Source: Thalia democratica (taxonomy: Eukaryota). From it: a DNA stretch of 64,000 nucleotides. Positions 3,435-51,400 of the stretch are shown piece by piece. A program made the translations under genes and the position numbers. The notes beneath the pieces are model-generated. The model was not told the origin of the DNA and did not search any database. It was given only the letters and a program-made list of their open reading frames with translations. The stretch covers positions 30,752,001 through 30,816,000 of the forward strand of contig OZ241834.1 of the NCBI GenBank assembly GCA_965202585.1. The letters run 5' to 3'. How positions within the stretch are numbered: the first letter of the stretch is position 1; the number at the start of each line of letters is the position of its first letter.

Positions 3435-5943
3435 TATCTAATAAATTATTATATCAAAGTTTCAATTTGTTATCAATAAGCCAAAAAAAAAGTAATGGAA
3501 AAATGGTTTGTTATTTTATTAAAATTATACTCAGTTCTTAATTAAACTTTTGTGAAATTTTTAACATATAATTTCTACTTGCATTTCAACAATGAATCAT
3601 TGCAGTTTAATTAGCAAAAGCATTATTTATTTTCTTTTAATGTTTTACTTCTAGACTAAGAGTTTATTTTAATTTTATATGATCATAAAACAAATTTTCA
3701 AGTTATTTAAGTTTAAAGTTTAATGTTGTTAACGATATAAATTTATTGATTAAGATAAAAACTTTATAAATTTGTCAAAAACACGTGTATACAACAAACA
3801 TACGTGCTCACATAGTGAGAACTGCATTTAGCAAAAAAGTTCTTTGATGTAGTTGCATTATTGCAGCAGCTAAACAACAAAATAAAAACCATAAGACATT
3901 AGTGAAGTTACATTAAGCATTTAGCAATATTTTTAATATCCTTTTGTTGTGCTGATCAAAAGATAGCAAAACCCCAAATTTTTTTCTTGTTTTAGGATTT
4001 TACAAAATAACATTAATTTTTTTTCTGTTGATCTAAAAACTAAAACTCGAATGATAAAAATTGGTAAAAGAAATTTAAACTGAAAATTTCAAACAGTTTT
4101 TTAACTTTATTTGTACAACTTACTAAGCAAATTTTAAAATTTCAAAGTGTATTTTGATTATTACCGTTTAGAAAATAAGCTAAATAAACTGCTGCTACAA
4201 TTTTTTTTCATTGTCACTTTTTCAAAAAGTAACACATTTTATAAAAAAGTAACAGCTTGGTTATCAAGTTTTCTTGTTTAGAGAGTATAACTTTGATGTC
4301 CTATAACTTATATAAACAGTACTTATTTTAGAAATATAAAAAATATATATAGCTAATATAGCTTGTTAAAATATAGCTTCTTATCGACCGAAATTACATA
4401 AATTTCCGCTTTAAATAAACTACTAATAGCTTATCATTTTGCAAGCAGAAACAAAAAATAATCTTGTACAGCAGAAACAATTTTTTACATAAGTACTAAT
4501 TTGTGTGCTGTTTTCTAAAAAGAAGAAAACAAAGTATTTAAAACTTATATTCAAAGATTCTTTAAATATAATTTTGAAGACAATTTTTTTAAACTTATTA
4601 AAACACTTTAATAAATCTGCAAGGTTGACAAAGCTTTGCAAAAACTTAAATCAGTTAATAAATAAAAAAATATATTTTATAATTAATAAGAAATGGTACT
4701 AACTATAAAATTTACAGTTAAATTTTTAAATCTTTTTTTTCTACTAACCAGTTTTGACGCGTCATGACGTTATAAAGTTGAGGAAAATTATAACAACTTA
4801 ATGTTTTTTTTATTTTTAGCACTTACCAACTTACGTATGAATTTTTTATTATTAAAAATTTCATTAGTATTTTAATTAGTAGGTTTTACTCCGTAGTTTC
4901 TATCTTTTTATCACGCGTCGCCCATACTACTTACTAAATATTTATAATATATACGTATATATATGTACTTAGTATTTAAAATAATATTTACATTTCTATT
5001 ATTTGATTTTATTTGTGGATTAAACATAGGTTTACACCAATATTTTTATAAACACAAAACACTTATCAATGTTTCACATTATAGTAATATTTTTACAACT
5101 TAAAAGACATTGTTTAAAAGTTTTAAAACTCAAAAATAAGTTTGATAGTATAAATTAAAAAATAATAATTTTTTTTCTTCAATAAATTATAAAAATTATG
5201 TTTTCATTTAAACTTTTAGGTTTTAATGCTTTAATTCTAACCATAGAATTTTATCAAAATAATTGTTATCAAAAAAGAGTTTTTTTTATTAATACCATAA
5301 AAGTAAAAAAGTAACAATTAGCTATTTAACTACTATATGTTTTTTATTAAGTCAGTAGTAATTTTGTTCATATTCATTTAAAAAATTAACATTTTCTGTT
5401 TAATTTTTTACTTGAATATTGATAACCCTGATATTTTAGGCTATGAATTAAATTAAAGTTATAAGTACAATTAAAATTTAATAAAAAGTTTTACATTTTA
5501 AATTCTTAGTTTTTATTTGTTACATTAAACTTAAAAAAAAACATTTTACATAATTTTCATTAAATAGTTTAAGAATTATTATAATATCAATTAACTTCTG
5601 TCCAGTATTACGATTATTCTTAGCTATTTTTAGTAAAAAAAAGGCTTTTTATTACAAATACATTTACATAAAAAATCTAAATTTTTTATAGTTATGTTCT
5701 TATAATTATGCTTATTATAGTTATCTCTGCGTTATTAATGACAATTATAAATAAATCAGTTATATACTACACATACTTCTTATATAAAAAGCTTGATACA
5801 TAAACTTATTGTACATTTAATAAGATAATTATAAACCTTAAAAGCATATAAAGTTTAGTTTTGCTTTTGGGATCTTTTAGTGAGTATTAAAGTATAAATC
5901 TACTACGACAGTATTCGGAGATATTACCATGAAACATTATAGT

Positions 5944-6062
5944 GTATATTGAACGAAAAAAAAACGCTCAAAATGTTTGGTCCTAGGACCTGGTACACTA
6001 AAAAACTTTTCGGTTATCGAGTCGCACACCACTTAGATACCTTTTAACATCTTGTCCAGGAT
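5944..6062 (-). repeat. Dispersed structured element, copy 2 (more decayed)
   Basis: Same core TTTCGGTTATCGAGTCGCACACCAC on the + strand; two stem mismatches. Confidence 0.8.
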
Positions 6063-7057
6063 TGTAAATATTAAGCAAAAGTATTTTTTAAAATTTCCTA
6101 AAGAGTTAACTTCGTATAAACGAATATTTAAACAGTATCGTTTTAAACTTTAAATCTAAAAGTAAACTTCGTTTTGAGCACATGAATTCTAATTAAAAAA
6201 CATTGTATAGCTACACGCTTCTAAAACTGAAATTTTTTGAGGGAATTTTATCCTATTAATTCATTGCGTCTTCTCTTGGGTATTCTTAGTATTGTGCTGG
6301 CATTCTGAAACTGTTTTCTGATTGCAGTGATCCTGAGAACACTACTATATTTAATAGAGTACAAACATTAACAAGTAAAATTTATTATATGAATTAAAAA
6401 CTATTACAAAATGAATGACATTGAAAACTGCAAAGTTGTAAGCTTTCAAAACATGTAGAAATAATACTAGCAATGCAGTTATAAGCTATATTTGGTTGAT
6501 TAAAACCTTTTAAAACAGTTGTAAAAAGGTTGTATATGTAAATAAACAATAAAAAACTTTACGAGCATTGAGTGTAAATTAATAAAATGCTTAATAAATT
6601 AATTTTGCGAACAGGTAAGTATATTTTTTCATTCAATTAAAGCTAAGTGATTTATTACAAGGCGATAATAATAAACCTAAATGTCTTCAAAATTCTTTTA
6701 TAGCTCTTAAAGTGGATTATTTAAATTTGTAAAGCAAATGTCCAAGGTTTGATTTACAACCTTAAACGTGTTAGAAGTTTAAATTGAATTCGGCATTTAT
6801 TTAATACGGAATTTTATCACCAATTCAAACAACAAAATTCCGACAAAACAAACAAAATGTCCACTAATATGTTTGCAATTAATAAACAATGTTTACAAAG
6901 CGAGCTTTATGTAGATAATAAAATTGTTTTCGCTAACCAAAATTAGTGTCACTGTCACGCTAATGATTAATTGATTTCGTTAATAATTAAACTTACCGTA
7001 AAAAATTAAAGTTGTTTTTTTTCGAGTAGTAGCAAATGTTGTAGTATAAACGACAAA

Positions 7058-10000: not shown

Positions 10001-11593
10001 CTATTCAAATAAGTATATATGTGTTATTTAACGTAATTGATATATTAGGAGGAACGTTTGTGGAGGAAAACGAGAAGCAAAGGGGTGAACTTGGAGGCAG
10101 GCAGCACTTGTCAGGGAGTTGACCCAAACAGAAACTGGAATTACCACTGGGCAGGTAACAATGTTTGATACTCATACTAGTTAAGTTAAAAAGAATAAAA
10201 TATAAAATAGGAAACGTTTTAGATTTGTGCTTAGTATCTACTCTCCTTAACTAAAGGTCTTAAATATTTCATAAATGTAGTAGAAAAAAGCGAAATTCTA
10301 AGAAGTTACTAAACAGACTAAAGGAGTTATTAGAAAAAAAAAGTTTTGAAAATCAACTGTCGAATATTTTTGTTAAACTTTCAAAATCATACTAAAAACA
10401 AATAGAATCACTGATAAGTTTTTTATTATTTCAAATTGCACAGAAGTTCTACTTAGGATAAACTAGAAACACATCGTTTAATTAAACTTCAATTTTATCT
10501 TCGTTACAACAACTGCAACGTGTGAAAAATAAACGTAACTCAAACTTAAAGTCCCCAATAGTACTAAATATAACCTTTTAAATAATTATTCAGAGGTCGG
10601 AGCGTCTCCCTTCCCGTGCGACCTGACGTACCACGGACCAGTGGCCTTTTCCGAGTCCTGCACCCGCCACCTGTCCTACTTCATAGAAGCCAACAGTGAC
10701 GTCATAGACACGGTCATCACCGTCCACTCGTACGGCCAGTACCTCCTCTACCCGTACAACTTCGACCTGGTGACCGTGCCGGCGAACCAGGCCCTGCACG
10801 TGAGTTGAAGCAACTATCGTAAAAGGCAGAAAGTTTGCTTTTTGAACGTTTTTATGGGCTGTTTTTGTTATTGTAAAGGCTAAATATGCCTTTTAGAGTT
10901 GAAACTGTTGTAATGTGTTTTAGTAAAATACCAAACTTTCGTAAAATTTTTTTTTTCTAGACTGCTTTCATTTAAATTAAGGCTAAACACATCTCGTTTA
11001 TGTATACTAAAATGTATAAGTTTAGTTGTTAAATGTTTTTTTAAAGGACCAACTCGGACAAGACATGTATGACGCAATAAAGGCTTTGTACGGAACCGAG
11101 TTCACTTTTGGTCAAGGCGGTCAAACTATATGTAAGTTTTAATTGACCAGTAGACTACAAAAAATATTTGCTTGTCTTTGAAGTGTTCTAATTAGCTTAT
11201 AAATATATTTTTTTATACCACATCTATGAACTATTGTTTTAAAACAGTTGAAATTTACGAGTTTTCAAAGCAGCATAAAACTGTGAACTAAAACTTCTTT
11301 TAATTTTTAAAACCAAAAAAAGTAGTTCAAAATCAACTTTTTTAAATTACAAAAATTTTTGTGTCGTTAATAATTTTCGGTTTTATTATTAATCAACAGA
11401 CGAGTGCAGCGGAGTGACCGCGGACTGGACGGCCGGGGTGGCAGGAATTCCAATCAACTGGACCATCGAGCTCAGAGATCTGGGCCAGTACGGTTTTCTC
11501 CTCCCAGAAGACCAAATAGTGCCCTCTGGCGATGAGTTTTTGGCCGCTCTAAAAGTTTCCGTCGCTCACTACCAAACTTCTGTGAATAAATAA
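7058..11593 (+). CDS. M14A zinc metallocarboxypeptidase (procarboxypeptidase A/B-like), 9 exons, 434 aa, signal peptide + activation peptide + catalytic domain
   Basis: Manually joined GT-AG exons 7058-7140, 7523-7604, 7995-8231, 9381-9587, 9886-9990, 10049-10154, 10594-10799, 11047-11131, 11400-11593 (1305 nt, phases consistent, ends TAA). Hydrophobic N-terminus MVKYNFNLFVLITLVLVYISKA; pro-region RVIYEGSQVWKLTPKN; zinc ligands HARE (H69/E72) and HSY (H196); WRKTR (R127), PNRN (N144/R145), Y248, TIELRD (E270), GFLLP. Confidence 0.95.
8808..8912. repeat. Short inverted-repeat element with internal TTGCAC(G)A repeats (MITE remnant)
   Basis: 13-bp IR AAATTGCACGAGG / CCTCGTGCAATTT enclosing three further TTGCAC copies; no TSD verified. 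Confidence 0.5.
9009..9250. mobile_element. hAT-family MITE (Buster/Charlie-like) in carboxypeptidase intron 3
   Basis: TIRs CAGGGTTTCCA / TGAAAACCCTG; perfect 8-bp TSD GTTTAAAT on both sides (NNNTANNN pattern); internal GGGCCAT subterminal repeats; 242 bp, non-coding. Confidence 0.9.
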
Positions 11594-11683: not shown

Positions 11684-12247
11684 TCAAGTTTTGCATAGAT
11701 TTTGAAATACAACAAGATATATATTTGTTTGATATATGTCTTAAATAATAACTCTTAGAAAGTTTAATTTGTCTAACAGCTTAACTAAAGATCTTATTTA
11801 GTTTTTTAAAAGAAAATAATGAAGTGTGTAGTTTTCAATGACTTCAGTAGTAAAAACAGCAAAACTCAAAAATATTAAGAATATTTATAAATAAGGACTG
11901 TAGGATGACTTACAGAATTTATCATCTGTTTAAAATCTTTGTAAAAAAAGTTGCTAGTGGGCAAAAGTGTTTGAAAAAAAGAATGACCTTTGTATCAAAA
12001 ACTAAATCAATCTTGTTAATATTTGGACATTGTGAGTAGTTTTTGGTTATAAACAGTAGCAGTGTTTTAAACAAACCAAAGAACCTTAAAGTTTTAAAAA
12101 GCTGTTCATAGTAGATCACTAAAAACAAGACTTTGTGCACATGAGGTAATTTAAAAAATTTAAAATCTATTTATCAATGATTCATAAACGATTGAATACC
12201 TATTTTCTACTATGTTTATAAAACAAGCTCAAGTTAAATACAGTGAA

Positions 12248-12423: not shown

Positions 12424-15400
12424 TCAATCGTCAAGTTGGCAGAGGGCCGCCACCCCTCTGTTAATCCAGTGACTTTGACGCTTTTTACTGGGCAATTCAA
12501 TCATCATCACAAAATTTGTCGAGTGGCCTGAAATGTATTGTAACATTGTTATAAAGTGCTGATAATATAAATAATACAAATTAATATATATTCTTATCTA
12601 AGCATAACATACATAGTGAAGATAGCAAAATTATGAAAACTTTTTAAAATTGTTTAAATAATATATCTTCAACCCCTAAAACATACTCCAACTTTATAAG
12701 AACAGTTCAAAGTTTAACCCAATATAATAAAAAACGCATTCTTCTTTTTTAGATAAAATAAATATTCTCGAACTGGTAATATTAGTATGCTACTTTTAAA
12801 ACTAAAAATAAACATTACATAGTAAAATTTGGAGTAAACTAAAAATTCTAAAAGTTAAAAAAAGAAAAGGTTAATAAAAATTATTCACCGTATTTAAAAA
12901 AAAATCAAATCTAATACTGTTAGGCAAAAAAAAACAATTATAAATAAAAAAGTTACCAGTGGTTGACAGGGTTCCCCTGCGAGCGCTGGTCTTGTACACG
13001 GGACACGTGTAAGTCTTCCTCTCCTTGAAGTCCTTCTTCACGCCCGGCTGCAGCCACAAGATGGGCAGCTGCTCGAACAGGATCTTGGGGTGCGACTCGG
13101 CCACCTCGTTCGTGTCCTGGCACCATCTGGCGCCCTCTATGAACAGACCCTTCACGTACACCCCTGTATTATTTGTTTGTGTAGTTTTTGTTTTTAATGT
13201 AAAATGTTTAAAAGCAGTTTTGTGTGATTAAATTGCTAAAAGGTTAAAAAAAATTAAAATAAAACTAAATTTTAAGCATTATTAAAACATAAAGCAAAGT
13301 TTTTGCATAGATAAAAAAAATTAAGTTTCGTAAAAAACAAGCGTATTTAAAAAGTTACTACTCATTATAATTTAATCAATTAATTTAAGCTTTTCAAACT
13401 AATAGTATCAGAGTTAAACTTTTTAAACTTTTTATATATTTTTTTTATTTTATATACTACGAGTTGGTGATAAAACACTTTATCTAGCTAAAATAAAAAC
13501 TAAAAAAAAATGTCTAATTGCTATAATATATAGAAGAATTAGCTTTTTTGATAGTTGTTTGCGTTGTGTTTTAGTTTAACAGCTTTTCTATAAAACAAAG
13601 CTTTTGGTTAATTATAATTCTAAAAAAAATTAACAATTTTGTCGCATTGAAAAATTTAAATGATTAAATAAGGTTTTAACCATCTTCGGGTTTATTATAA
13701 ATTCCACTTTCAGAATTGCAAAGAACTTCAAATTCAAAACCGACATGGTCTATTGGTATCGTGTATCTGTTAAAAATTAAATTTATAAAGTTTGTTTAAT
13801 AATATTGGTTAATTAAAACTAAGTAATTTAATTTTTTTTTAATTTATATATTATATATAAATTAGATTGGTTGTTTTTAATGCATTAACTTGGATCTGAT
13901 TTTAATAACAATTAATTAGAAATAATAGTTATAAGTTAGCAAATATAAAGAAAAAATTTTAGTTTATGCAAAATAACATTTGTTACTTCTAATTTTGAGA
14001 TAGCACAAGTTAGTTAGTAACGAAATGGGATAAAAATAGATTTCAGAAAAAGTTATTAAAAAAACATTCCTTGTGTTTGAACAATATTCCAACAGTAAGT
14101 GTACAAGTAATTCCTTTGTTTTAACTCAACTAACTTTCTGGAGTAATTTTGAGTGGCGCCGGTCAAAAACGACTGAGTGAAATAAAATCCTGAAATCCAG
14201 AAAACATTGGGAGTTCCTTCTTTGATCCATTTGTTGAAAAACTGCAGGCGAGCTAGCAAGTCTGTTGCAAATATTATGAAGTATTATATATAATAAACTT
14301 ACTTATGCAACAATACACATACTTTCAAAAAAATAAATAACAGGTCAAATTATAATTTACTTAAAGTTTTTAGCAATACCATTTTGTAAAATATAAGTAT
14401 TGAGTAAAATTAAAGAAGTTAATTTCCAAAAAGGTTTACATAATTGTTTTTCAATTGTAAACAAACTCAAGACTACTAAAAAACTTTGCTTTTTTTATTT
14501 GAAAGTTTGTTTTGCACATACGCTTGCCATATACGTTTAACAAACCCTCACTGACAAACCAATTAAAACGTTTTACCGGCGATGTAGCCACCCAGCGGCT
14601 TGAGGCTCGGGTAGGATTTTGCGGCCCACATGTTGGGAACCTTGCCGGTGAGCATGGAGTTGAAGACCTCCTCCAGCTCGGAGTTCATCACCACCAGCCC
14701 CTTGATGGCTTTGCGGAGTGACTGGAGCGAGCTTCGTATCACCACGGTAAGCCGGTTGAACCTGATCAGCTCCTGTCTGTTTTGTTAAATATTATTGATT
14801 GTTTATTATTGTTTGCTGGTACTTGGAGAAAGGTTATCAAAACTGTAAAATAAATGGTTGAAATTAAACGAAAGGTACTTAAAGTTTACTACAAGTCGAC
14901 TTATGCGTTATATTTATTTTCTAATTATTTTGAATTAGGTTTTTATTGTACAATACAAATAGCTTTTTCTATAATTGAAAGATACTTTTAGTTTTATTAC
15001 AAGCTAATATTAAACAACAGTATAAAAGTTTCATAAGACAAATGAAAATACACAAAGAAAAGTTTTTACTCATAAGTGAAGCATATTGAGTATTGAATAC
15101 TTTACAAAAAATAATATAAAAAAATGAGCTTGAATAGTGATTTGTTTATAAAAGCTTGGTAATTCGTTCCTATTTGAAATTAAAATGAAAGATGGGATTT
15201 TTAAAAAAGTTATTAAAAAAAAATATAATACATATGTAGTAAATACCTTAGAACGGTGTTCATGGATTCGGTGTAGATAACCGGATATTTCGTCATCACC
15301 TCTTCCAGGTCGAAATCAGCAGGAAGTTTTTCCAGGATGTCTCCCGCCAAATCGTCGATGACCTCCTCCGCCGACTTGCCCCCTCCGCCCTGTTGCCGCG

Positions 15401-18400
15401 GCAACGTGAGGAGGACCCCGTCGAACAGCTCGTGGGTTTCCTTGTTGTCCTTGGTGATGTCCGCGTTCTCATGCAGACCGAAAACCTGCATAAATTTTTT
15501 ATTAAAAATGCTTTATTAATTATTAAATGATAATTAAAAAAAAATTCTGCTTATGTTTCATATAAAACATGGGTTTTAAAATTTATTCATTTTAACAAGC
15601 GTTTAAAATTATCTAAAACCAAATAATCCTTAAGCTATTTTTAATTTTTTTTCCCAACACAAAAAACTTCAGATACTGTACTTTAAATTTTATAAAGTTA
15701 TTAGTTGCATGTACCCAAAGTTACAAAATCATTCTTTCATATAGTATTACATTTAAGACTGATTTTTAAATAGCTTTTACATTAAAAGTGTTTAGTTTTT
15801 TTTTAACCTCTGGATGAGGTATGAGAGGAAGGTCTTTGATGTAATCAACAAAATTTTGCCATTCTCCCCACTCCGGAACAAAATAGTTACCACTAGGTGA
15901 CAGCAAATACGTTTCTTCATCTACCAGCTGGTGCTTGTAAAACTGAAAAATAGTTAGGTTCAATACAATATAGTTTTACTAAATACTATACTTAAAACTG
16001 AAAAATACTAAACATAGTAAAAATTTATTTGAATTTTTTTAACAACTCCTGTTAATAAACTAATAAGAAAATTTAAACGAATAATATTTTAAATAGACAT
16101 AAACAAAGTTTTGAAGTTGATTTAAACTTGTTGTCGCATTTCGACTTTTATTTGTAAATTTCAAAATTAACAAATCAAAACTGTAATAAGCAAAAAAAAA
16201 CAGTTCCGTGAACAGAAATTTATTTATTTAAGAAACAAAACTTAAACTTTATAAAAATCATACACAATTCATAACACTTATATACATATATATAGATAAA
16301 CAAAAGAAACTTGATTTAGTAGTGAATTGAGGAGCCTTCTGTCCTTATCATCGGTGACTCTTCCTCCGTAATTGCACTCTCCCGTCAGATACGTCAGCGC
16401 TTCGTACGGTACCTCGTCGTACTCATTCAAAAACATCTGTTTTTTGTGTGTTAGCTTGTAAATAACTCGAAAAAAATTAAAAAATAAAGCTAAAATTTGG
16501 TATATTACAGACGTTTTTGGTAATTTTAATACTTTGCTTAAGTTTCTACTGGACCAACACATCTTTGATTATTGGAAATTTAAAAACTAATTCCAACTTG
16601 CAAGTGTATAGTAAACTTTTACAAAAGTCATAATTTTACCGTAAATGAAAACATACTTGCAACTGCCGCATGCTGATGCGAAGATCTGATTCGTTGAACT
16701 CGTAGGCGATGTTCCATCCGAGCGCGCCAAATTTCCTTCTCTCTTGCACCATCGCGTGGAAGAAACACAAACCGAACAACATTTTCTGCCAAGCCTGTCA
16801 AGTTGATGGAAAGATATTAAAAGCTTATACGCGGTTGTTCGTTTATGGGAAAAGTTGTTGCACTTGCTTAAAAACATTATTACATTTAATTCTTTACTCT
16901 TGCATCAAAATTTTAATTTTAGAAAACACAATTGTTTATTAAAAACCCTAATCTCGCTTTAATCTCGATAAATAAAATTATCTTCTTAGAATAAAAAGTT
17001 TCACAAATACTTTTGGTTTATTGCAGTCGTTAAAAAATTCAGGGTTGGATATCGGATCACTGACGTAAGATCTCAATAAATTTGCTCGCAGACCTTTCGG
17101 TGGTTCATTGGTCATTTTCACTCCGTTCTATATTACGTTAAAAATAAAATAATATTGTTTATAATTATCAAAATGAAAGAGTCCTTTTTTTCAAATCAAT
17201 ATATTGAACACAAATTAAAACACTTTTTTTTTTAATAGTTGTAACCTAAAAACTGCTTTAAATAATTAAAATTTGCAATCGTTTAAATGAAGGCTATATT
17301 GGTTTAAAATTGTCCTTATTAATAAAAAGTTTATTAAATTAAAATAAAACTAGTATTTGAAAAATATGCAGCTTAAAATCCATCATTCCTAATCAAAACC
17401 ATCATACCTGCAAAATAGAGACAGGGAACTTGTCAGAGGGGTAACTGGTCAACCACAATCTGAAATCATCGTGAACCTTACCTGCAACAATTGTCTCCTC
17501 ACAAATCTTCGAAAGGGTCGGCATCCAACTCGTTGCTAAGTGACAATTTTGAAGCACCACCCAACTACCCTGTTTGATTGTTTAACGAAATTAAAGCTGA
17601 TTAGTTTTTAGCAGGATAAAAATTTTTTTAGGTTAAAATGAGTAAACATTATGTTTATCATTCTACATCTTGAACATAGTAATAGTTTATTGAACAGCAT
17701 AAAAAAAGACGCTCAAAAATATTTAGTCTAAGGACCTGGTGCACGAAGAACCTTTCGGTTATCGAGTCGCACACCACTTGGATACCTTTTAATGTATTGT
17801 CCAAGACAGTAAAAGCAGTTGCAATTTATTTCAAAGTAATAATAAACAAACTGACGTTTACAAGTTGCTTACATTTAATTTTAAATACCAATAACAAAGA
17901 AACTGACATTAACAACGGCGTCATCGATCATCTTACACGCGATTGGACCCTGACCCTGACCGAGTGAAATCGTTCCTATTTTGTTTCCACCGAATCCCTT
18001 GTCTTCCGCGAACTTCAACAGGCCTGAACGTATTTTTTTTGTAAAAAATCTAATAATGTATTTAAAAAATATTGTTGTACAAATCTCAAACTTAAATTAC
18101 TAAATACTTTTTTTTTTACAGCGTAACAATTTATGCAATTATAAACGAAACAACTTAAAAAACGTAAAAGACCAAAAAAAAATTCAGTTAGTTTTCAAAA
18201 AAGTACTAGAGTTACAAAAAAATACAACTCTTACATCTGCTAATAAAAATCCTATAAACGCAGATCTAAAAAAAACGAGAAATTTACAGAACAATCAAAT
18301 GAAAAGTACCGGCGGTGGGATCGGCTCCGGGAGAGAGGATGAATATCAGGGGAACGATCGAAGTTGAGTCGTCGTAAGACCCCTGAAGGTCGAAGGTGGG

Positions 18401-24400: not shown

Positions 24401-27400
24401 TTAGTTTGAAAATATTTACTTTTATATCATTATTATACTTATTTATATTACTTATTTATATTACTAGTTCACCTGCTGGCTAGCAAACTGCAGTTTTTCC
24501 AGCCCGTTCAAGTATCGGTTTTGCAGCCCCTTCACCTCATTACGCTTCTCTTCCAGCAAGTTTTTAAACGTCAGTATGAGTTCCAAGTACGAAGTGGGGG
24601 TTACGTACGTCTTCCGCCTCAGCGAGTTCCAAAATTTGTCCGACAGGTGGCGCACGCTGCACGTAAATTTAAAGTGCAATGTCTTTTTAGTATAACATGC
24701 ATTTAGTTTCAACTAGCTTTTTGAGGATTGATTGTAATGGATTTGGAGTTTTAAAAGTAATGGGGCATAGGAAGGGATATATAACTTTTTTCACAATTTG
24801 ATCTTATTTTATAGAGTTTTAACTAAGCTACGAGATGTTATTTACAAATTTAAAAAATTCAATACATTTTTTTGAGATATAAAAGATCAAAGTTGGAGGT
24901 TTCTTTTGAGAAGCGCGAATTAAAACCGCGAAAAAAGACTACTTCACTAAAAATCTACCTTCTCCTACGTTTTTTGAGATAAATACCTCAACAAACGTAG
25001 GAGAAGGTAGATTTTTAGTGATTTCTATCTATATGCCGTTTTAGTTTACGCTTCCCATAAGGAACCTATTGTAGCCTCCGACTTAGACCGGCTATATCTC
25101 AAAATTATTTGAGTTTAAAAAATCTGTAAAAAGTAGTGATGTACCGGACTCACTATCCGGGTCCGGCCGGATATTGCCATTTTTGTCTGATATCCGGATC
25201 CGGCCGGATTCTAATTTGAAAAAAAAGTCCGGATCCGGTTCCGGCCGGATTCTAATTTGAAAAAAAAGTCCGGGTCCGGTTCCGGCCGGATTCTAATTAA
25301 AAAAAAAAGTCCGGATCCGGATCTAGTTAGTAAAAAAGAGCATACTGAAAAGTATTTTTTAAAAAACAAACCCTGAGTAAATTAATAAGAGTCATTTTCG
25401 TCAGTTAAAATTAAACACCTACCGTGATTGGCTCATTTTGTACACGTGACTAATTTACATTTGTTTACATTTAAACTATGAAATAAACATTTCATGAAAT
25501 AAAACTCTTTACATATGTTGTAAAATTGAAAACTTTGAAATGAACACTTGCATTTTTTATTGTTTAAAGTTGAGCTCAGAGAATATTTAGAGTTAAAACG
25601 GTTAAATGTACGAGCAAATGAGAATCATATGACGAAATATTTGAAACTAAATACTGATGCAACAAAACATCAGAACATGACAGGCAGTTTATATGTAAGC
25701 AGTTAGTTAGTTTGGTGTGTAGCTTGAAGCAACAAAATATCTTGAACGTTTTTGTGAATGCTTATTGTAAGTAGTGTTTTGTTTTAAAAGTGAATATTTC
25801 AACAGGTGTTTAATTGTTTAAATATTTAAGCCAGGTTTATAGTTTAATAGTTTATTAAAAGTTTTACAGTTTCATGTCTACTAAAAGTTTTATTTAATTT
25901 TTAGTTTTTTGTTTTAAGTCATTTGATATAGATTTAAATAGCTTCCAGTTTTTAAAGTGTTACCAAAGTAATTAATAATTTTGTATATGCTAGTATTTCT
26001 TGTTGTGTTTTATATAAAAGATTCATCACTCAAAACTGTCGTGTCTGATTATAGAAAGTAGTCTCAGTTAGAATTTAGTATTTGTTAGATATTTATTAAA
26101 TAAGGTAGGATTTAATTATGATGGGTAGTACTGATAAGTTAAGTGTACCACAATCAGTCCACAACTTTACTACCAAATTGTCAACCTTTGCTAGCTGTTC
26201 TACTGATTATTAGATTATAGTATTTTTTTCAGTTTTTAAAAACCTCATTCTGACTCAGGCTTGTTTATACTCACTCTAGCTAGTTTTATTGACTTAAACA
26301 GTAGAAACCCTGCTAGTTTGAAAATTTTTGGGAATTTTAGAAAATCTTGGACTGCCTCAGGCTAGTTTAGTTTTATATAAAAACTCAGGCTAGTTTTCTT
26401 TTAGATTTTGAATAAGTTTGAGCTGATCCAGTTTTCAATATTTTGTAACTTTCTAGTGTATTTTGTTCAAGAACTTGATTTCAGATTTTTAATTGTAAAT
26501 AACACCTAAATTTGTAAACCTTGTGGCTAGCTGTTCTACTTATTATTAGATTAAAGTTCTTTTTTTTTCAGTTTTTAAAAACCTCATTCTGACTCAGGCT
26601 AGTTTATTCTAGTGATGTACCGGATTCACTATCCGGGTCCGGCCGGATATTGCCATTTTTGTCTGATATCCGGATCCGGCCGGATTATAATTTGAAAAAT
26701 AAGTCCGGATCCGGTTCCGGCCGGACTCTAGTTTGAAAAAAAAGTCCGGGTCCGGTTCCGGCCGGATTTTAATTTAAAAAAAAAGTCCGGATCCGGTTCC
26801 GGCCGGATTCTAATTTGAAAAAAAAGTCCGGATCCGGATCCGGCCGGACCCGAAATTGTGGGTCCGGTACATCACTAGTAAAAAGCAACTTGTAGCTTAG
26901 TTAGAACTAAATAAAATAAGACTAAATTATGAAAAAGGCGATTTCTCCCCCTATGCTTTTTGTTAAAAATATAAAATAAAATCAATCTCATCTTAAAAGT
27001 TTTTAATTGTACTACAAAACATAATATTTTTTACACCTCTCATGGAAGTTCTTGCACATTTGCACGCATTTCTGCCTGATATCGTCTTCGAGGTCAACAT
27101 CAGCGAGAAATCTGTGAGCCACAATCTCCAACGCGTCCTCTGGCCACGCCTGTTGTGTGATTTTTTTTAAATAAAAATAAAAGTGTTTCCAAGTTCTGTC
27201 TGGCCACGCCTGTAACGTGTACATACTAACATAAAATAGTAAGAGTATTAAAATACTTTCTTTTCGTCATTCTTGTCAGAAAAATGTCATGAGATGTTTT
27301 AAACCAGTCTATATAAATAAAAAGATTAAAACTAAAGTATGAAAGTCTTCCAATTGATTTCGCTTGAGAAATAAATAAAAATTTATTTTAAATTGTTTTT

Positions 27401-39400: not shown

Positions 39401-42400
39401 TAGTAAGGATTTAAAAAAATACCCATTTTAGGTTAGAATGTTTTTCCTGAGCTTGAGTCTGGTTTTGATTTTTGATTAACAACCCTTTTTGCTTTAAATT
39501 TATAGTTTAGAATTGTATATTTGTTATAAATTTGATATTTCAGGTAATCAACAAGTTTGCCACTTAATCAGAATAATCCTGGATACTTTAAAATTTTGAA
39601 AATCTCAGTATGACATAATATAACTTGGAACATTTTAAATTTCTTTTTTAAACCCAGGCTGACTCAAGGTAGTTATTTTTATCTCAGTATAGTTTTAAGA
39701 TTTCAGGCATTTTTTTTCTACATTTTGAATGAGACACAGTTAATTTAGTCCCAATAATTAATTTTGTAATTTTAGTATTTTTTGCTGAAGATATTTGTTT
39801 TTCTTGCCTTTGAAAATAAAATAAAAAAAATGAAAAAAACCTAGATGACTACAGTTCAGTTTAAAAGTCATTCAGGACAGTCTTGATCTGTCAAATCAGT
39901 TTTAACCAAAAGGATTATAATCCTGTAAAACTAATTTAACAGTATGTACATTAAATGTTTGACATAATAAAAAATGTTTTTTGTTTCAAAGATAAGCAAC
40001 CCTGGTCTTAAAATATTTAAATTCTTATTTTTTTGCAAATTATTGATTGTCCTTTTAACTTTTTTTTTGCATATTACATCTTTTACTTACTAAAAATCTG
40101 ATTTTAAATATAACTTCTTTTATTAAACTAAGCTAAAATAAAAATTAACACAATAATAATTTTAAATATTTACAGTAAGATATCAAATTTACTGTATATT
40201 ACTTATTTTAAACCAAATATTTTACTTATGGTGGTTTTTTATATTTTTTATAGAAATAAAATGTTTTATAAGTTTAATCAGGACAATTTTTTTAAAGCTA
40301 TAAAGTATTTTTTTAATATTGATTAAACTAGATTAGAAATCAGTAATGACATTAGTTTTTTGATAAACTTTTTACACACTCAAACTTCTTTGGATAACTA
40401 TTATGTTATTTTAAAGGTCGGAAAACTTTGGCAAAGTAACTTTTAAAAAGATACTTATGCTGAGACATTATACCTCAATTGAAGAACTTACTTGACAAAA
40501 GGAACCACAACCCAGTAGCAGTTCTAATAAACAGCTCATTATGGTTAGATAGTTTAAGAATAATAGGTCTCTCGGTATTTTAGTCTCTTAATTACACTAA
40601 AAAAAATAAAAGTCAATGTCTCTTCTACTAATGTTGTTACATTTTTAAATTTTACAAAAATGATTTATTCATTTTTATAAGTGCTTAATAACTTTTGAGA
40701 AAAATCTAATTATTGTTATGTTAACTTTTATTAATTTTCATTAATTTAATTGTTTTTTTTAAATCATTATCATTTTAATTAGTTTAAAAAATTACTTGTT
40801 TTTATTAGTAACAGCTTTTTTTTGCTTTTTTTTTTTTTTTGAACGTTGTAGTTTTATTTTCTTTATGTTATAGCTCATTTTTATTCTTACTTATTTTAGT
40901 AAGTTAAATAGTAGAATCCAAATTCTTAAACATACTTTTCAAAACTTAAATATATATAAGTCTTGTTTTTTTAAGACATGTAAAAGATTAAATTATTGAT
41001 AAGTTTTAAATTTAAAAACCTTTCAGGTTAAAACTTTACCTTTTAACGTAAAGTTCAATATAGATTTTATGTGTGTATGATGTTAGATACTGTTATATAA
41101 TTTTTTGTTTGTTGATATTTTAGTTTATAAAAAATAGTTAATGTATTAAATTTTAATAGTCTCATTTTAAAAAGTTTTTTGTTTTAGAGTTTGAATTTTA
41201 ACTGTTAAGTTTTTTTAAATAATTTTTAGCTCATTATAAATTTGATTAAAGTTGGGTATGCAACTCGATGACCGAGAGGTCTTTTTGTGTATCCAAGTCC
41301 TTCAACCAAAAATAACTTTTGGGCATATAAACCTCATTAAGACCTGAATTATTACTAGGCATTAACTTTAAAACCTAAATTTTAGGTTTATTCAGACTCG
41401 TGCTAGCAACAAGACCAACAAAGACAGTTCCAGGTCAACAAAACGGATTTAGCTGTGATATGATTTTTTATGTTTTTTTTCGTTACTTTTTCGTTACTTT
41501 TTGGTGTAATTTTTGTTTTCGCTATTTTTTCGTGGCAATGCATTTGTTAAACACATATAGTAATCGCTTAATAAAAAATCATTAAGTAAAGTTAACTAAA
41601 TAATTAAAATTACCATGCAATAAAAAGTACCAAGACTGCTGATTGTTAATTTGGATTGTGGTAATCTAGTTAGTATTTTAGACTTGGGGGATACAAGTAA
41701 AATATTGTTGTAAAAATTAGATCATTGATATAAGTTTATTAAAATGGATAGGGTAAAGTGGTCAATTTTAAGTTAGCGTGTAAAATTAACTGGGTGTTCT
41801 CGAATTATTAGTAAATAAATCGATTGAAAGTATTTACATATTCTTCAACACTAGCGGCGCTAAAGAGTGAAAATTGGGGTGCACCGAATTTTAATTTTGT
41901 GATTAAGGGTTCACGAATTCAAATTAGCGTGCCGACCACTGAACTAAACTACAGTTAAGATGTTTCTAAGAATACAACTATTGATTCAAAAGCCCATCAT
42001 TAACGCTTGGTTGTTCGAAACATTCAAGCATGATGGTTCATAACTTCAGCTGCAACTGAACAAAAGTCGTAACCTCTATTCTGTTGAACTCGTCGAAGCA
42101 GGCCCACGCGCCGCACGAAGCCAGTCCCTTGAAGAACTTTCCCATGGCCTTGTAGTCGAGGCCGTCGGAGCAGTTGAAGACGACGCACTGCTTCGCCAGC
42201 GCCTTCGCCAGATCCTTGGTCGTCTCGGTTTTTCCGGTACCCGCGGGTCCTTCGGGCGCTCCGCCCAGGTTCAACTTCAACGCTCCCATCAACGTTCTGA
42301 GGTTTTAATGTAAAATGATGTTTAAAAGTTTAACTGGTAGAGTAAAATAAGTTAAGACTAAAATTCACAATTACATTACCTGAAACTTTAGTGTGATATA

Positions 42401-45400: not shown

Positions 45401-48400
45401 AACAAACAACTCACAGCTTGGGTCATGATGTCTTTCCAGTACCCGTCGACGATTCCGAACTTCCTTCCTTCTTCCGGCATCTGAGCGAGGATGTCGGCCG
45501 AACTGAATATGGGTTCCAGGTACATCCAGGTGGCCTGACACTTGAGCCACTGGTCGAATATGTCCTGCATCATCGTCAGCTTCGATTCCCACTCCTGTAC
45601 AAGCAAGATGTAAACAGTTTTTTATATCACATAAGCATTAAGTTTTGTTTAGAGCGGATATCAGTGTTTATTTTGAGCTATTCGTTGACTTTTTTTTTTA
45701 ATGTAAACTTGCTTCCTTTGTATTTTAATTTTTATTTTCAGACTTAAAAGTTATGTTAAATATAAATATGTATATATATTTTTTAATTATTATTATCACT
45801 AATAGTGCATAATAATTTACTATAAGTAAGTAATTTAAGTTTAAAGTATTTTTTTAGATCTTTACAAACAGCTCTTCTGTACCATATTACGAAAAATAAG
45901 TTTAGTAAAAATATGGTTAATAACACTTACTTTTTTTTATTAAAAAATTGTTTTTGTAAAGCTGTAATATCTTGTTTTTATTATACCGATTGATAATGAA
46001 AGTTTTATTCTATCTTTTTATTTTTTTAAGTAAGTAATAACATCAGTCTTTTGAAAATATATAGAAAGTTTTATACCTGTACAGAAATATCTAATGGTAT
46101 TTTACTTATATACAAAAAATAATTTAAAACTTTAAAATAGTTTTAAAAGGAATTTTAAAATATGTACTTTTTTAAAGAACAGTAGTTTTAGACTGGAAAA
46201 AATTAAATTTACTATTAATTACTAATTTTTTATATAATTTTTATTTGGCTATTACTTATACAAACTAATGAAAGTTAGATATTTAGTATTCCTATTTTCT
46301 TAAGCTTTTTTGACAATATTTAAGCACTTGTTTTCTACACTTTTTTACCTTTGCTTCGTTTTCAATGGGTCCGATATACGGAGAGTTTTTCATCGTCAGA
46401 CATTTTATCACGTGATCATCAAGCAGCTCCATGATTTCATCAACAGAAGACAGGATGTGGATATCCTGATTGGATTAACAATACGTAAATGTCTTTATAC
46501 GATTTTCTCTTTTTGCTTTTTCTGTTCTGAACCTGCTTATACTAAAGATCTGCTGCTGGTAACGACTTTTCTGCTTTTTTCTTTCTAATCTTTGTTTTGT
46601 TTTAGTCTTTTATTCTGTGTCTTTTCATCTAAGAATTAGCTTTTTATGAACTTTAAAATTCTGAGTATAAGAAAGAAACTCAATTATGTACGTCATTTCT
46701 AGGGTCTTTTTCTATCTAGCGATTACATAACTTTCCTGTTTTTTCATCTAAGTACTAACATGTTTTTCTTACCCAGAGTTCTAGAAACTAAGTCTTAGAT
46801 ACTAAATTTAATTACAACTAAGCTGAACTAACTGTTATCTCGTCAAGGTAAGGGCTTATGTAAGGTGATCCCTTCATAACTAAAACTTTCAACTTGTGAT
46901 CGTCTATCAGTATCTGAGTCTCATCTATTGACCCTAATATTTTGATACCCTGACAAAAAAATAATCTGTTTAGTCTTCTTTATTACTTTTATAAACTAGA
47001 TTATCTTTTAACATCAACTGCTTATGTAGTGATATGAGCTGACTATAAAACGTTATCAAACATTAATCTCAAAAAATAGCAATACAGGCTCATAGACTAT
47101 AAACTAGCTATTTGTTAAGTTATCAAACTTATACATTCCACTGACTGTTTCTAACTTTATAGTTGACTGAACTAAAACTGAACTAAGCTCAAAAACATTA
47201 GAAACATTTTAAGTAAATTTAGTTTGTTAAAATAAGTTTAATAATACAACTATAAGTTTTATAGTTCATGCAATAAACGCAAGCATTAAAGTTATTTAAT
47301 TTTAATGCACATAATTCAACTACAAAAACTACATGTTGTATACCCAAACAAGTATGAATAAACTAAAGTACACTAGACTATTGGTTTTTTGAAACAAATA
47401 CATTTAAATGTAAATATTCTTTAAATTACTCTATAGATAAAAATAACAACAAAATTCTTTGATTTTTCATATGAAAAATAGAAAACAATCTTTAAAAAAC
47501 ATGTAGGTAAAAACAAACTCCTTAAATAAATATAACAACATTTTTTATAGTCAAAAATAAGTTTAATATTAAAATAATGAGAAATAAAATATAAGACAAG
47601 TGAAGTTTCGTTTATATAAACAATCTACTTTTTATAAACTGAAAACACTAAATAATACTTTTAAAAACTTTTATTCAAAAAAAATTTTAACAACATTCAG
47701 CGAAAAAAACTTTATTGCACTCTTATACTCTTACTTAAGTATTTTTTCAACAGTGATTAGCGAAAGCTATATTCAAGCACTAAATTTTTCCTACACAGCT
47801 CAACATTAACTAGTTTTAAAACACAAAAAATAATTAACACACACTAGTTTTAACTTAGGTGAAAAAAAAGCTGAGACAACACAACACATGCATTTTTTAT
47901 ATGTTAAACACTAGTTTTTATTGTTAACCGAGAAAACATTGCTACGTAACTACGTATTTACGTAATAAACTCAAAACTAGTGTATATTTTTAAAGATTGC
48001 AAAGCATTATTAAATTAAAAAAATTATACAAGACAGTTTGGAGTGTAACACGAATTACAATCGAGTCAAAGCCATAACACTTTTAGAATATTTTCATAAA
48101 ACTTAGGTGAAAAAAATATTTCAAACTACGTTATGGTCAAACAGTGGCAACCCTGTTTTATTTTACTGATCAGTAAGAACGAATTAGACTTAGCTTTTAT
48201 TAACTAGTTTTTATTTGCTTTTTTATTTGTTTTTTGATTACTTAGCTGTTGGAATTATTAAGAAAAGCATTATTTTAAAAATAAAACAATATTCGGGAAA
48301 GTTTTAAAAGTATGGAGGGTATTTTTTCTTAGAAACTAAATAACTTTAACTCCTTTGATGAAGAAGCAAAAAATAATGAATGGTGTCAAGACCCATGAAG

Positions 48401-51400
48401 TTAAAAAGTTCTAAATGAGACTAAATGAGTTCCTATATGAATCATGTTATGATGCACACTTAAATATCTCACACTATTTTCTCCGTACGGGTTCAGCTCG
48501 ATATTCATGTCCTCCCATTCCGAGTACATCTTCTTTAATCTGTGGTCCAGAGACCACTCTTTGCTGGCCTTAGCCCCAATATTGCCTATTCTGAGGTTAA
48601 TTTTTGATATGAACTTCTTAATTTTAAGATTAAATAACAATAAAATATCTCTCTACAAGCTAAATGTATGGAAATTTCTGTAAGTTTACTTTGTTCAAGT
48701 AAACCATAACAATTGTATGCAATGATATATGAAACTTGTAAAGACTTTAAATGTGCTTCTAAATGACATGACTTAAATGTGAACAAGTGTCTACAGATTG
48801 CTAAACTAATTTCTTTTTGTAGAAAGTAGTGAGTGAGAATTTACCCTTACTCAGGTAAACTCTAAATATTTTTTAACAATTTTAAACAAATGTTTTTGAT
48901 GGCAATCAACCGAAATTTAAACTCAAAAATCAACAAAGTTTAATTACAAACAACAACAGTATGGTGAAGAAATTATTTGTAAAGTTAATAGGACTAGCAG
49001 ATTGATATAAAAATGTCGTTATGCACAAACAACAACGTCATTAAGCAAAGCAAATAAGTTTGTCATGCTAAAAAAATTACTTAATTTTTGAAAAAGAGTA
49101 TTCTATACTAGATTCAATTGACTTTTTTTCAAGTTATTAGAACTAGTAAGTATCTTTATTTTCAAATTTCTTGATATTTCTCTAAAATGTTTAAATACAT
49201 TAACCATAATAAGCAGTGATTTCCAAACTTTTTTTTCAAAAGTGTTTACATTCAACAATTAAGAAAAAACTATGTGGTACTAGATTAGCTAGCAATCATT
49301 TAAATTTGACTTTTAGTTAATTCAACCGGTACAAAATATACTATAACTTAACCGCAAATAGATTTTTTAATTTTCTAAAATAAAATTTATATCTAAATCA
49401 ATTACCAAAAAAAAATTATAAGCACTAAAAAAACAAAAATACAATCTTAAAATACGCACGTGTACCGACTTTGAGAACCACTGCTACAAAACAAAACATG
49501 CAAATAAAAACACAAAATAAACAAATGAAAACAAATGATTCTTATTTTACCGAGTCGCGATACTGGGTGAGTATGAGCTCCACATCCGCCCACTCCTGCT
49601 TCATCTTGGAAAGTCCCTTCTCCAAACTGTACTCCTTGCCGGCTCTCACGCTCAGCTCCTCCAACCTTCACGTGATGACAAGCATGAAAATGAGGGCATG
49701 CAACGAGTCGGTGGTAATTTTGATTAAAAGCTAAAGGCGCGCTATATTTTGAATTTTTATCAACTAGTCCGAATTTTAAAAGTTGTCATAAAAAACTAGT
49801 TTTAGTCTTAAGAAAATATATTTAAAGTAAAATAGTTAAACATGAATAAACAAATGTGATCAGATGAAACTGTAGTCTGAAAAGATAAGTACTTAATGAA
49901 AAACAGCTTAATGAATTCAAGATGAAGGTGAACTATTTAACTTGTAATTCTACAATGAGTTTAGATGAAGCTTTGTAAAAAGAAAGTAAAGTAACAAAAA
50001 CAATCGCAAAAATTTTGTTCAGCAAACAAACTTGGTGACGTATTTTCCCAATCCAAATTCCAGCATGTGCCACAATGAGGAGTCTTCATCGGGTCTCACG
50101 TCGAATCCGACCAAATCACTTATCTTTTTTATTTTAGTTTATGTAGCATTAAAATTTCATACTTTATAGTTTTTCAACAGTTTATTTAGTCCTTTATAAA
50201 AGCTTTTGAAAATTTAAATCTTTTAAATCATATGCCAAAACACATAAAAAAAACATATATTCTTAGGTATTCGTAACAAAAACTATAGCAAACTAATAAT
50301 GTCCTAATAAATTAAAGAGTTAACATAAATATATCTAATGTACCTTTCAAAAAAACTAACACGTAAAACTTAAGTTTTTTATAATTTAGCAAATATAGAT
50401 TTTTAAACTAATAAAAGTTGTCATAAACCATAAAAATAAAGAATGACTAAATTTAAGAGCGCCTGTTGAAAAGTATTAATCCTTTATGATATCAAATTTA
50501 ATATATTCTTATTTAGTTTTCTCACCTATATTTAGACTGACAATCACGATAAAAACTAGACTAGACATAGAAAAAACATAATTTACAAAATACATATCTT
50601 TTTTTTACTTTTTCACAAATTCGGTTTACATTTATCAACAACCTGAACCTCAAACGCAATCGACCAATTTAAACAGTTTTTACTTTAATCAAACAAACAA
50701 CAAAACACCGACCTCGTCCCAGTGGCGATCCTTGATCCCCGGGTTGCAGATGGTGATCAATACGGGCAGGTTCACCTTGAACTTATCGATCTTGTTCTTC
50801 ACTCCCTCGGCGATCCTCCTGGGAGCCGGCTGGTCGCTGAACGTCTTGGACATCTTGTACGCCGCCCTCCACATGGCCTGCAGGTCGTCCGTGATCGTCT
50901 CGGGCGTCAGCTGCTGGAACGGGCCTGGGAAAGTTTTTTTTTTATTTGCTTTGTTTTTAAATGCTTTTTTCTTTACAAAAAGTATGCTCATAAGAGAAAT
51001 AGCAGTAAAATAAAAGTAGTTGCGAACAGTAATTTAAAACGTGGCGTATTTTGCATATTGTTATTTACATTTTAAAATATACAATGCCGTCATTCAAAGC
51101 TGTAACTTTGCAAAACAATAACAGGAATAAAGCTTAATGGTTTGAATAATATACGAGTATCTAAATCCAGTAAAATAAAGTTTAATTTTAATCTTCAAGT
51201 AGTCCAAGTCTGCTACTTCAAACAAAAGTTAACAAAGTTTTAGCATTAGTTAAACAGCAACCGACCGTTCAACCACAGTTCATGGGAGTTATGCCACTTG
51301 AGAGCGGTGGTCCACAACGTCTCATAAGGCTCCTTCTGCTTGAAAAGAACTTGCAGCAACGGAAACTGGGTTTTTTCGCCAAACTCCAACAGCTCTTCAT

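Follow-up and report, generated by a model that had tools for sequence, protein, structure and literature searches.

Two adjacent pairs of duplicated linker exons, the first a candidate mutually exclusive pair, in a DNAH3-type axonemal dynein heavy chain gene of the salp Thalia democratica

The window analysed here is the whole 64,000-nt stretch of Thalia democratica contig OZ241834.1 (assembly GCA_965202585.1) from position 30,752,001 to 30,816,000, and coordinates below are those of the window unless another locus is named. Dynein-like exons run along its minus strand from ~58.8 kb down to ~12.4 kb and include the AAA1 P-loop exon (GPAGTGKT) at 42041-42304. The exons are GC-rich at third codon positions, and the introns contain ~24% GC (0.245). 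Two kinds of repeat also occur in the window. A 41-nt tandem unit (ATCCGGTTCCGGCCGGATTC...) is present in a dynein intron at 25095-25381 and 26607-26900, in 3.1 and 4.4 copies; its two blocks have longer near-identical flanks and form a GC-rich repeat within AT-rich intron. A dispersed element at 2576-2749, 5940-6087 and 17661-17868, one copy of which lies within a dynein intron, retains among its copies a conserved stretch with an 11-residue translation.

The gene is a DNAH3 orthologue, as judged from the best matches of its tail, linker and AAA-ring exons. The tail exon matches solely the two DNAH3-type chains among solved structures, human DNAH3 (8j07_g3) and 9fqr_Xx. A constitutive linker exon (PFQQL...DRHWDE, 50924-50713, minus strand, 70 full codons, Pfam DHC_N2 positions 32-97) has its best PDB match at human DNAH3 893-958, with E 1e-20 versus 1e-13 for DNAH7, and scores 76-78 bits against DNAH3-type chains versus 54 against DNAH7. 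For the AAA exon the scores are 111-115 bits against DNAH3-type chains, versus 97 for DNAH12 and 85-93 for DNAH7. UniRef names a DHC_N2 protein of this kind "linker domain-containing protein". Chain Xx of PDB 9fqr (4069 residues) is titled 'putative malate dehydrogenase 1B' and behaves as a DNAH3 heavy chain in every search; other chain titles of that entry are also odd, and the titles look shifted.

Two exons downstream of this linker exon the gene carries a first pair of tandem homologous exons on the minus strand, exon A (49665-49551, 115 nt) and exon B (48590-48473, 118 nt), separated by an intron of 960 nt. Exon A has acceptor ...gtgaAG|G and donor TCG|GTaaaa; exon B has acceptor ...cctcAG|A and donor AGT|GTgaga. 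The constitutive exon directly upstream (50123-50032, minus strand, donor CAA|GTttgt), whose counterpart is present in every locus compared below, leaves a codon split after its second base (..ACC AA|gt); whichever copy follows, A or B, supplies the third base and makes the codon lysine (AAG or AAA). Both copies are free of stops and finish in phase 0, and their lengths differ by 3 nt with identical reading phase. The peptides are identical at 13 of 38 residues; their global BLOSUM62 score of 71 exceeds the 12.4 +/- 5.2 of shuffled sequences (z 11.4) and was reached by none of 5000 shuffles, and blastp gives E 9e-6. Windows of 39 open codons make up 2.7-3.8% of the local intron sequence. In a self-comparison of all minus-strand open segments, A/B and the second pair described below were the only duplicated dynein exons of the gene.

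Splicing in silico sets the constraint on their use. Joining A to B produces a stop 7 codons into B, and skipping both produces a stop after 5 codons when the reading continues into exon a of the second pair, or after 19 when it continues into exon b. Since inclusion of both or of neither shifts the frame and brings an early stop, each mRNA for the full protein requires one copy. The earlier note on this DNA had described the same coordinates, lengths, AG/GT ends, phases, absence of stops and 13/38 identity, all of which were reproduced exactly, and its claim that a full-length protein needs exactly one of the two exons is upheld by these stops. A and B adjoin one another as internal exons of one gene, on one strand and with canonical splice sites; they are alike in length and phase, homologous, encode the same protein segment and exclude one another by frame. 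On these sequence properties they form a well-supported candidate pair of mutually exclusive exons.

Other means of enforcing exclusivity were sought in the surrounding introns. With an intron of 960 nt between the copies, steric hindrance is an unlikely cause. No U12-type donors occur at the cluster, and no selector or docking RNA element for it was found in the introns of the window. Inverted repeats in these AT-rich introns are at chance level; the best pairs 26 nt (73% complementary) of exon b with the end of the intron preceding A, and owes its match to a CACGTG palindrome. No intron elements common to the salp and the related organism described below were found.

The second pair follows directly. 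Exons a (46949-46833) and b (46465-46349), also on the minus strand, are each 117 nt and both cover DHC_N2 positions 171-207. Their peptides are identical at 18 of 39 residues (z 16.6). All four combinations of A or B with a or b stay in frame in silico, and since 117 is a multiple of three the frame does not force a choice between a and b. The next constitutive exon (EWESKL...IMTQA, 45594-45415, minus strand) is preceded by an intron at ..EAK|EWE... Third-position GC (GC3) is 0.82 in A, 0.64 in B, 0.41 in a and 0.49 in b. The idea that A and b are GC-rich and enclose two decaying AT-rich copies, B and a, was considered and dropped, since b is not GC-rich.

A and B align to the same residues of human DNAH3, 992-1027, and both occupy positions 133-169 of the 403 of DHC_N2. 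This places them within the linker, roughly a third of the way along, and not at the junction of neck and linker where the earlier note had put them. P0122, a homologous spliced fragment, was modelled with AlphaFold together with 12 relatives (pLDDT 87.5). In this model the A/B exon accounts for the greater part of a long helix plus strand one of a beta-hairpin, and the a/b exon for strand two, a helix and the beginning of a further long one. The exon ends fall within secondary-structure elements, as those of mutually exclusive exons typically do (PMC5740500).

When the linker exon upstream was used in an exhaustive search, mostly single-exon genomic fragments were recovered, and the surrounding DNA was examined for nine of them. 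L004, L005, L008 and L009 are ENA and JGI metagenome contigs of one organism, called here the L004-type organism, and this organism has the same four exons: A' and B' (115 nt each) followed by a' and b' (117 nt each), in the order of the salp, all with AG/GT ends and with the phases of the salp. The two species also have in common the intron at ..EAK|EWE.. after b, which is absent from the other loci. In L002, L006, L007, L012 and L014 the a/b-type exon extends to ..WLK. An intron after ..WLK is present in those same five loci and absent in the salp (45415-45594) and in L004 (15885 onward); the change of intron position common to the two species accompanies the a/b duplication. The closest plankton relative, represented by the P0003 contigs from Tara Oceans, has contigs that end before the A/B position. 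When metagenomes were scanned with a B/B' profile, the L004-type organism was recovered again; the only other matches were two dynein genes without introns, on different contigs.

In a tree from 957 constitutive-exon columns the window and L005 form a clade at 100/100, joined by a path of ~1.05 changes per site. The branch of the salp gene is 0.79 versus 0.26 for its L005 orthologue, so that the salp gene has evolved ~3x faster. Exon trees pair copies across the species: b with b' (99/90), a with a' (89/73) and B with B' (86/75 and 89/84), with 94/91 for concatenated A+b. A clade of a' with b' within their own species is rejected (p 0.0105). Pairing of A with A' is compatible with the exon-tree data, which give it no resolving support.

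Synonymous divergence (dS) between the salp and the L004-type organism is saturated, so codon positions were contrasted in place of dN/dS. For B, identity between the species is 0.71 at codon positions 1+2 versus 0.34 at position 3 (p 0.00018); for a it is 0.71 versus 0.33 (p 0.00013). The contrast for B and a pooled has p 8e-8, and A and b show the same pattern. Together with the invariant residues described below, the pairing of copies across species and the conservation of codon positions 1+2 over position 3 show that both copies of both pairs have been under protein-level purifying selection since before the split between the salp and the L004-type organism. The long-term selection that the earlier note had proposed gains support from these third-position substitutions and from L004-type orthologues with intact splice sites and phases. 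B as a long-dead relic is incompatible with the pairing of exons across species and with the conservation by codon position. Polymorphism among the four L004-type contigs (10 of 6381 intron bases differ, none in exons) has no power here.

The individual copies retain what the family conserves. B has 5/5 residues that are invariant in a 13-sequence dynein alignment (A, K, E, M, W), and exon a has 4/4 of the invariant residues of its exon, one of which, a glutamine, b has lost. The GC3 of B, 0.64, exceeds the intron GC of 0.245 (p 2e-7). One alternative is that B is mainly a poison exon, in which inclusion of A+B would lower dynein output through nonsense-mediated decay. The stop 7 codons into B in an A+B transcript fits such a role, as does the frequent finding of joint-inclusion reads for frame-incompatible pairs (PMC5740500). 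A poison exon has no need, however, of a 39-codon open frame, invariant residues and a coding pattern conserved between species, and the same role is inapplicable to the in-frame pair a/b; we consider it very unlikely.

Still less probable, to the point of being hardly credible, is that B and a are an unspliced fragment of a paralogous dynein in the intron between A and b, in the layout A [B a] b, or resemble dynein exons by chance. B and a do adjoin one another between A and b, and the best PDB match of B is a Chlamydomonas inner-arm chain rather than DNAH3. The short exons A, B, a and b, however, do not discriminate between DNAH3, DNAH7 and DNAH12, and nothing points positively to a paralogue. 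Layout, phases and splice sites are kept in L004, with substitutions of coding type, and similarities of z 11.4 and 16.6 argue against chance. Sequencing runs X1-X3, which match exon B or a 9-kb stretch, also contain introns and are therefore DNA; they contain 5/8 of the sampled exon B words, which counts against this reading, although the source sample of the window may be among them.

Records of exon B as expressed sequence were sought in several ways. Two marine metatranscriptomes contain next to none of the query words from exon B and from the 9-kb stretch. The open frame around B had no match in protein databases. For the upstream exon the sole match there was a same-species metagenome contig of 596 bp. 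The matches of the upstream-exon and representative searches included no spliced salp product. In the exon trees the longest terminal branches in the salp are those of B (1.9-2.5) and a (1.74); A and b have branches of 0.7-0.9, with 0.7-0.8 for A. B also differs from the usual motifs, with YGENS for YRDT and DH for EK. The long branch and motif departures of B could reflect relaxed constraint; since the whole salp gene has evolved ~3x faster than its sister, the branches of B and a are partly explained.

A reading that builds on these records would have the cluster functional in the ancestor and in the L004-type organism, with B, and perhaps a, un- or rarely used in the salp, B being a young pseudo-exon under relaxed constraint. 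The long terminal branches agree with it, as do the loss from B of the near-universal EK and RD(T) and its gain of one codon, GC3 values for B (0.64) and a (0.41) below the 0.82 of A, and the lack of B from protein databases and from the RNA runs listed. Against this, the frames of B and a are both open, for which the joint chance from intron composition is ~7e-4; the splice sites are intact and all invariant residues kept; the GC3 of B is far above intron GC; the acceleration extends to the entire salp gene (0.79 versus 0.26); and the invariant glutamine was lost in b and not in a. We think this outcome unlikely, and we infer instead that B is spliced into salp mRNA.

Among the remaining loci one A/B-type exon only was found in L002, L003 (the bivalve Dreissena polymorpha), L006, L007, L012 and L013. 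L014 has two intact A/B-type exons, at 11316-11433 (118 nt) and 12104-12218 (115 nt), with AG/GT ends and frame-incompatible, and a single a/b-type exon. In the species tree L014 clusters with the set that contains Dreissena, away from the salp, and a common origin of the A/B duplications of L014 and the salp is rejected by that tree (p-AU 0.027); the exon tree, of 38 columns, does not resolve the question. The duplication in L014 is thus probably independent of that in the salp, going by the placement of these sequences. In each species the divergent copy has an extra residue at the hairpin turn, YGENS in the salp and YREGD in L014, versus YRDT.

Two further features were noted in the introns of these genes. 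An intron of L012 contains, at 15311-16863, a minisatellite with an 80-nt unit in 19.4 copies (95% matches); each unit repeats the final 30 nt of the dynein exon that precedes the array (..MQDILDAWLK), together with the GTAAGA donor of that exon. At 13367-18382 of L013 a 1671-residue open frame of a Pao/BEL-type retrotransposon (protease, reverse transcriptase, integrase) lies antisense to the orthologous dynein gene, within one of its introns.

No description of a mutually exclusive cluster in DNAH3 orthologues or in a dynein linker was found in the open-access literature. Mutually exclusive exons are a known class with explicit prediction criteria (PMC3228551, PMC5740500), and the salp cluster, as a candidate, agrees with all of those that are judged from genomic sequence. 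Some dynein genes have mutually exclusive forms (Kollmar, PMC5100056). In cytoplasmic DHC1 of Schistosoma mansoni a mutually exclusive exon has been reported (Pillmann et al. 2011, PMC3228551; also Kollmar 2016, PMC5100056); as in the salp, tandem homologous exons of similar length with split codons at their ends lie in a dynein heavy chain gene, and were predicted from length, phase, splice sites and homology. Unlike that cytoplasmic chain, the salp gene is an axonemal inner-arm DNAH3 orthologue, and it has two adjacent linker clusters, a length difference of 3 nt and conservation over two deeply diverged species.

The arthropod muscle myosin gene Mhc (cited in PMC3228551) likewise has several clusters in one motor gene, in which alternative homologous exons replace structural modules and are thought to tune mechanochemistry per cell type (PMC3228551). 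It belongs to another motor family, and its exons have been validated by RNA and function, whereas those of the salp are known from genomic DNA. Hatje et al. 2017 (PMC5740500) describe frame-incompatible pairs linked to nonsense-mediated decay in which, as in A/B, joint inclusion or skipping shifts the frame and the ends of the encoded peptide lie inside secondary-structure elements; the human cases were validated by splice-junction reads, and the salp differs also in that its pair a/b is not frame-protected.

The best explanation, which as a whole we hold to be reasonably probable, is that the salp gene for this DNAH3-type inner-arm heavy chain uses A and B as mutually exclusive alternatives. 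The pair would go back to a single linker exon that was duplicated in tandem in an ancestor common to the salp and the L004/L005 organism. Each mRNA would carry exactly one of the two copies, and transcripts with both or neither would presumably be cleared by nonsense-mediated decay. The exchanged pieces would be most of the long linker helix with the first hairpin strand (A/B) and the second strand with the next helix (a/b), so that one gene could encode up to four versions of a linker module of ~77 residues. The A/B pair probably yields two motor versions. The likely purpose would be tuning of the lever arm for different cilia or flagella, comparable with the alternative exons of insect muscle myosin. 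The linker is the lever arm of the dynein motor, and it is in this respect that we suggest an analogy of the salp linker exons with Mhc. The isoforms would presumably differ in function; tissue specificity, such as the sperm versus cilia variants suggested in the earlier note, is hypothetical.

A wider proposal, which we put forward tentatively and regard as doubtful, is that the DNAH3 linker module (~77 residues, helix/beta-hairpin/helix) is a recurrently evolved tuning point of inner-arm dyneins. It would combine a tunicate-side 2x2 set, in which each pair is modelled as encoding one strand of the same hairpin, with co-adaptation of B and a and with the independent duplication of L014. Within that set the two copies that evolve fast in the salp, B and a, may have co-adapted and be used in combination. 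If this proposal is right, one gene would give rise to mechanically distinct inner-arm motors for different cilia or for sperm.

The pair also bears on annotation, since a gene predictor will choose one copy, or fuse the two and disrupt the frame. The combinations of A or B with a or b offer a natural minimal set of linker variants suited to comparisons of motility or structure. The waveform of cilia is shaped by inner-arm dyneins, which in animals are usually diversified through gene duplication; here a single DNAH3 orthologue appears to have been diversified by exchange of a defined piece of the linker. The deep retention of the exons, with a probably independent duplication elsewhere, points to the hairpin module as a functionally tunable part of the linker.
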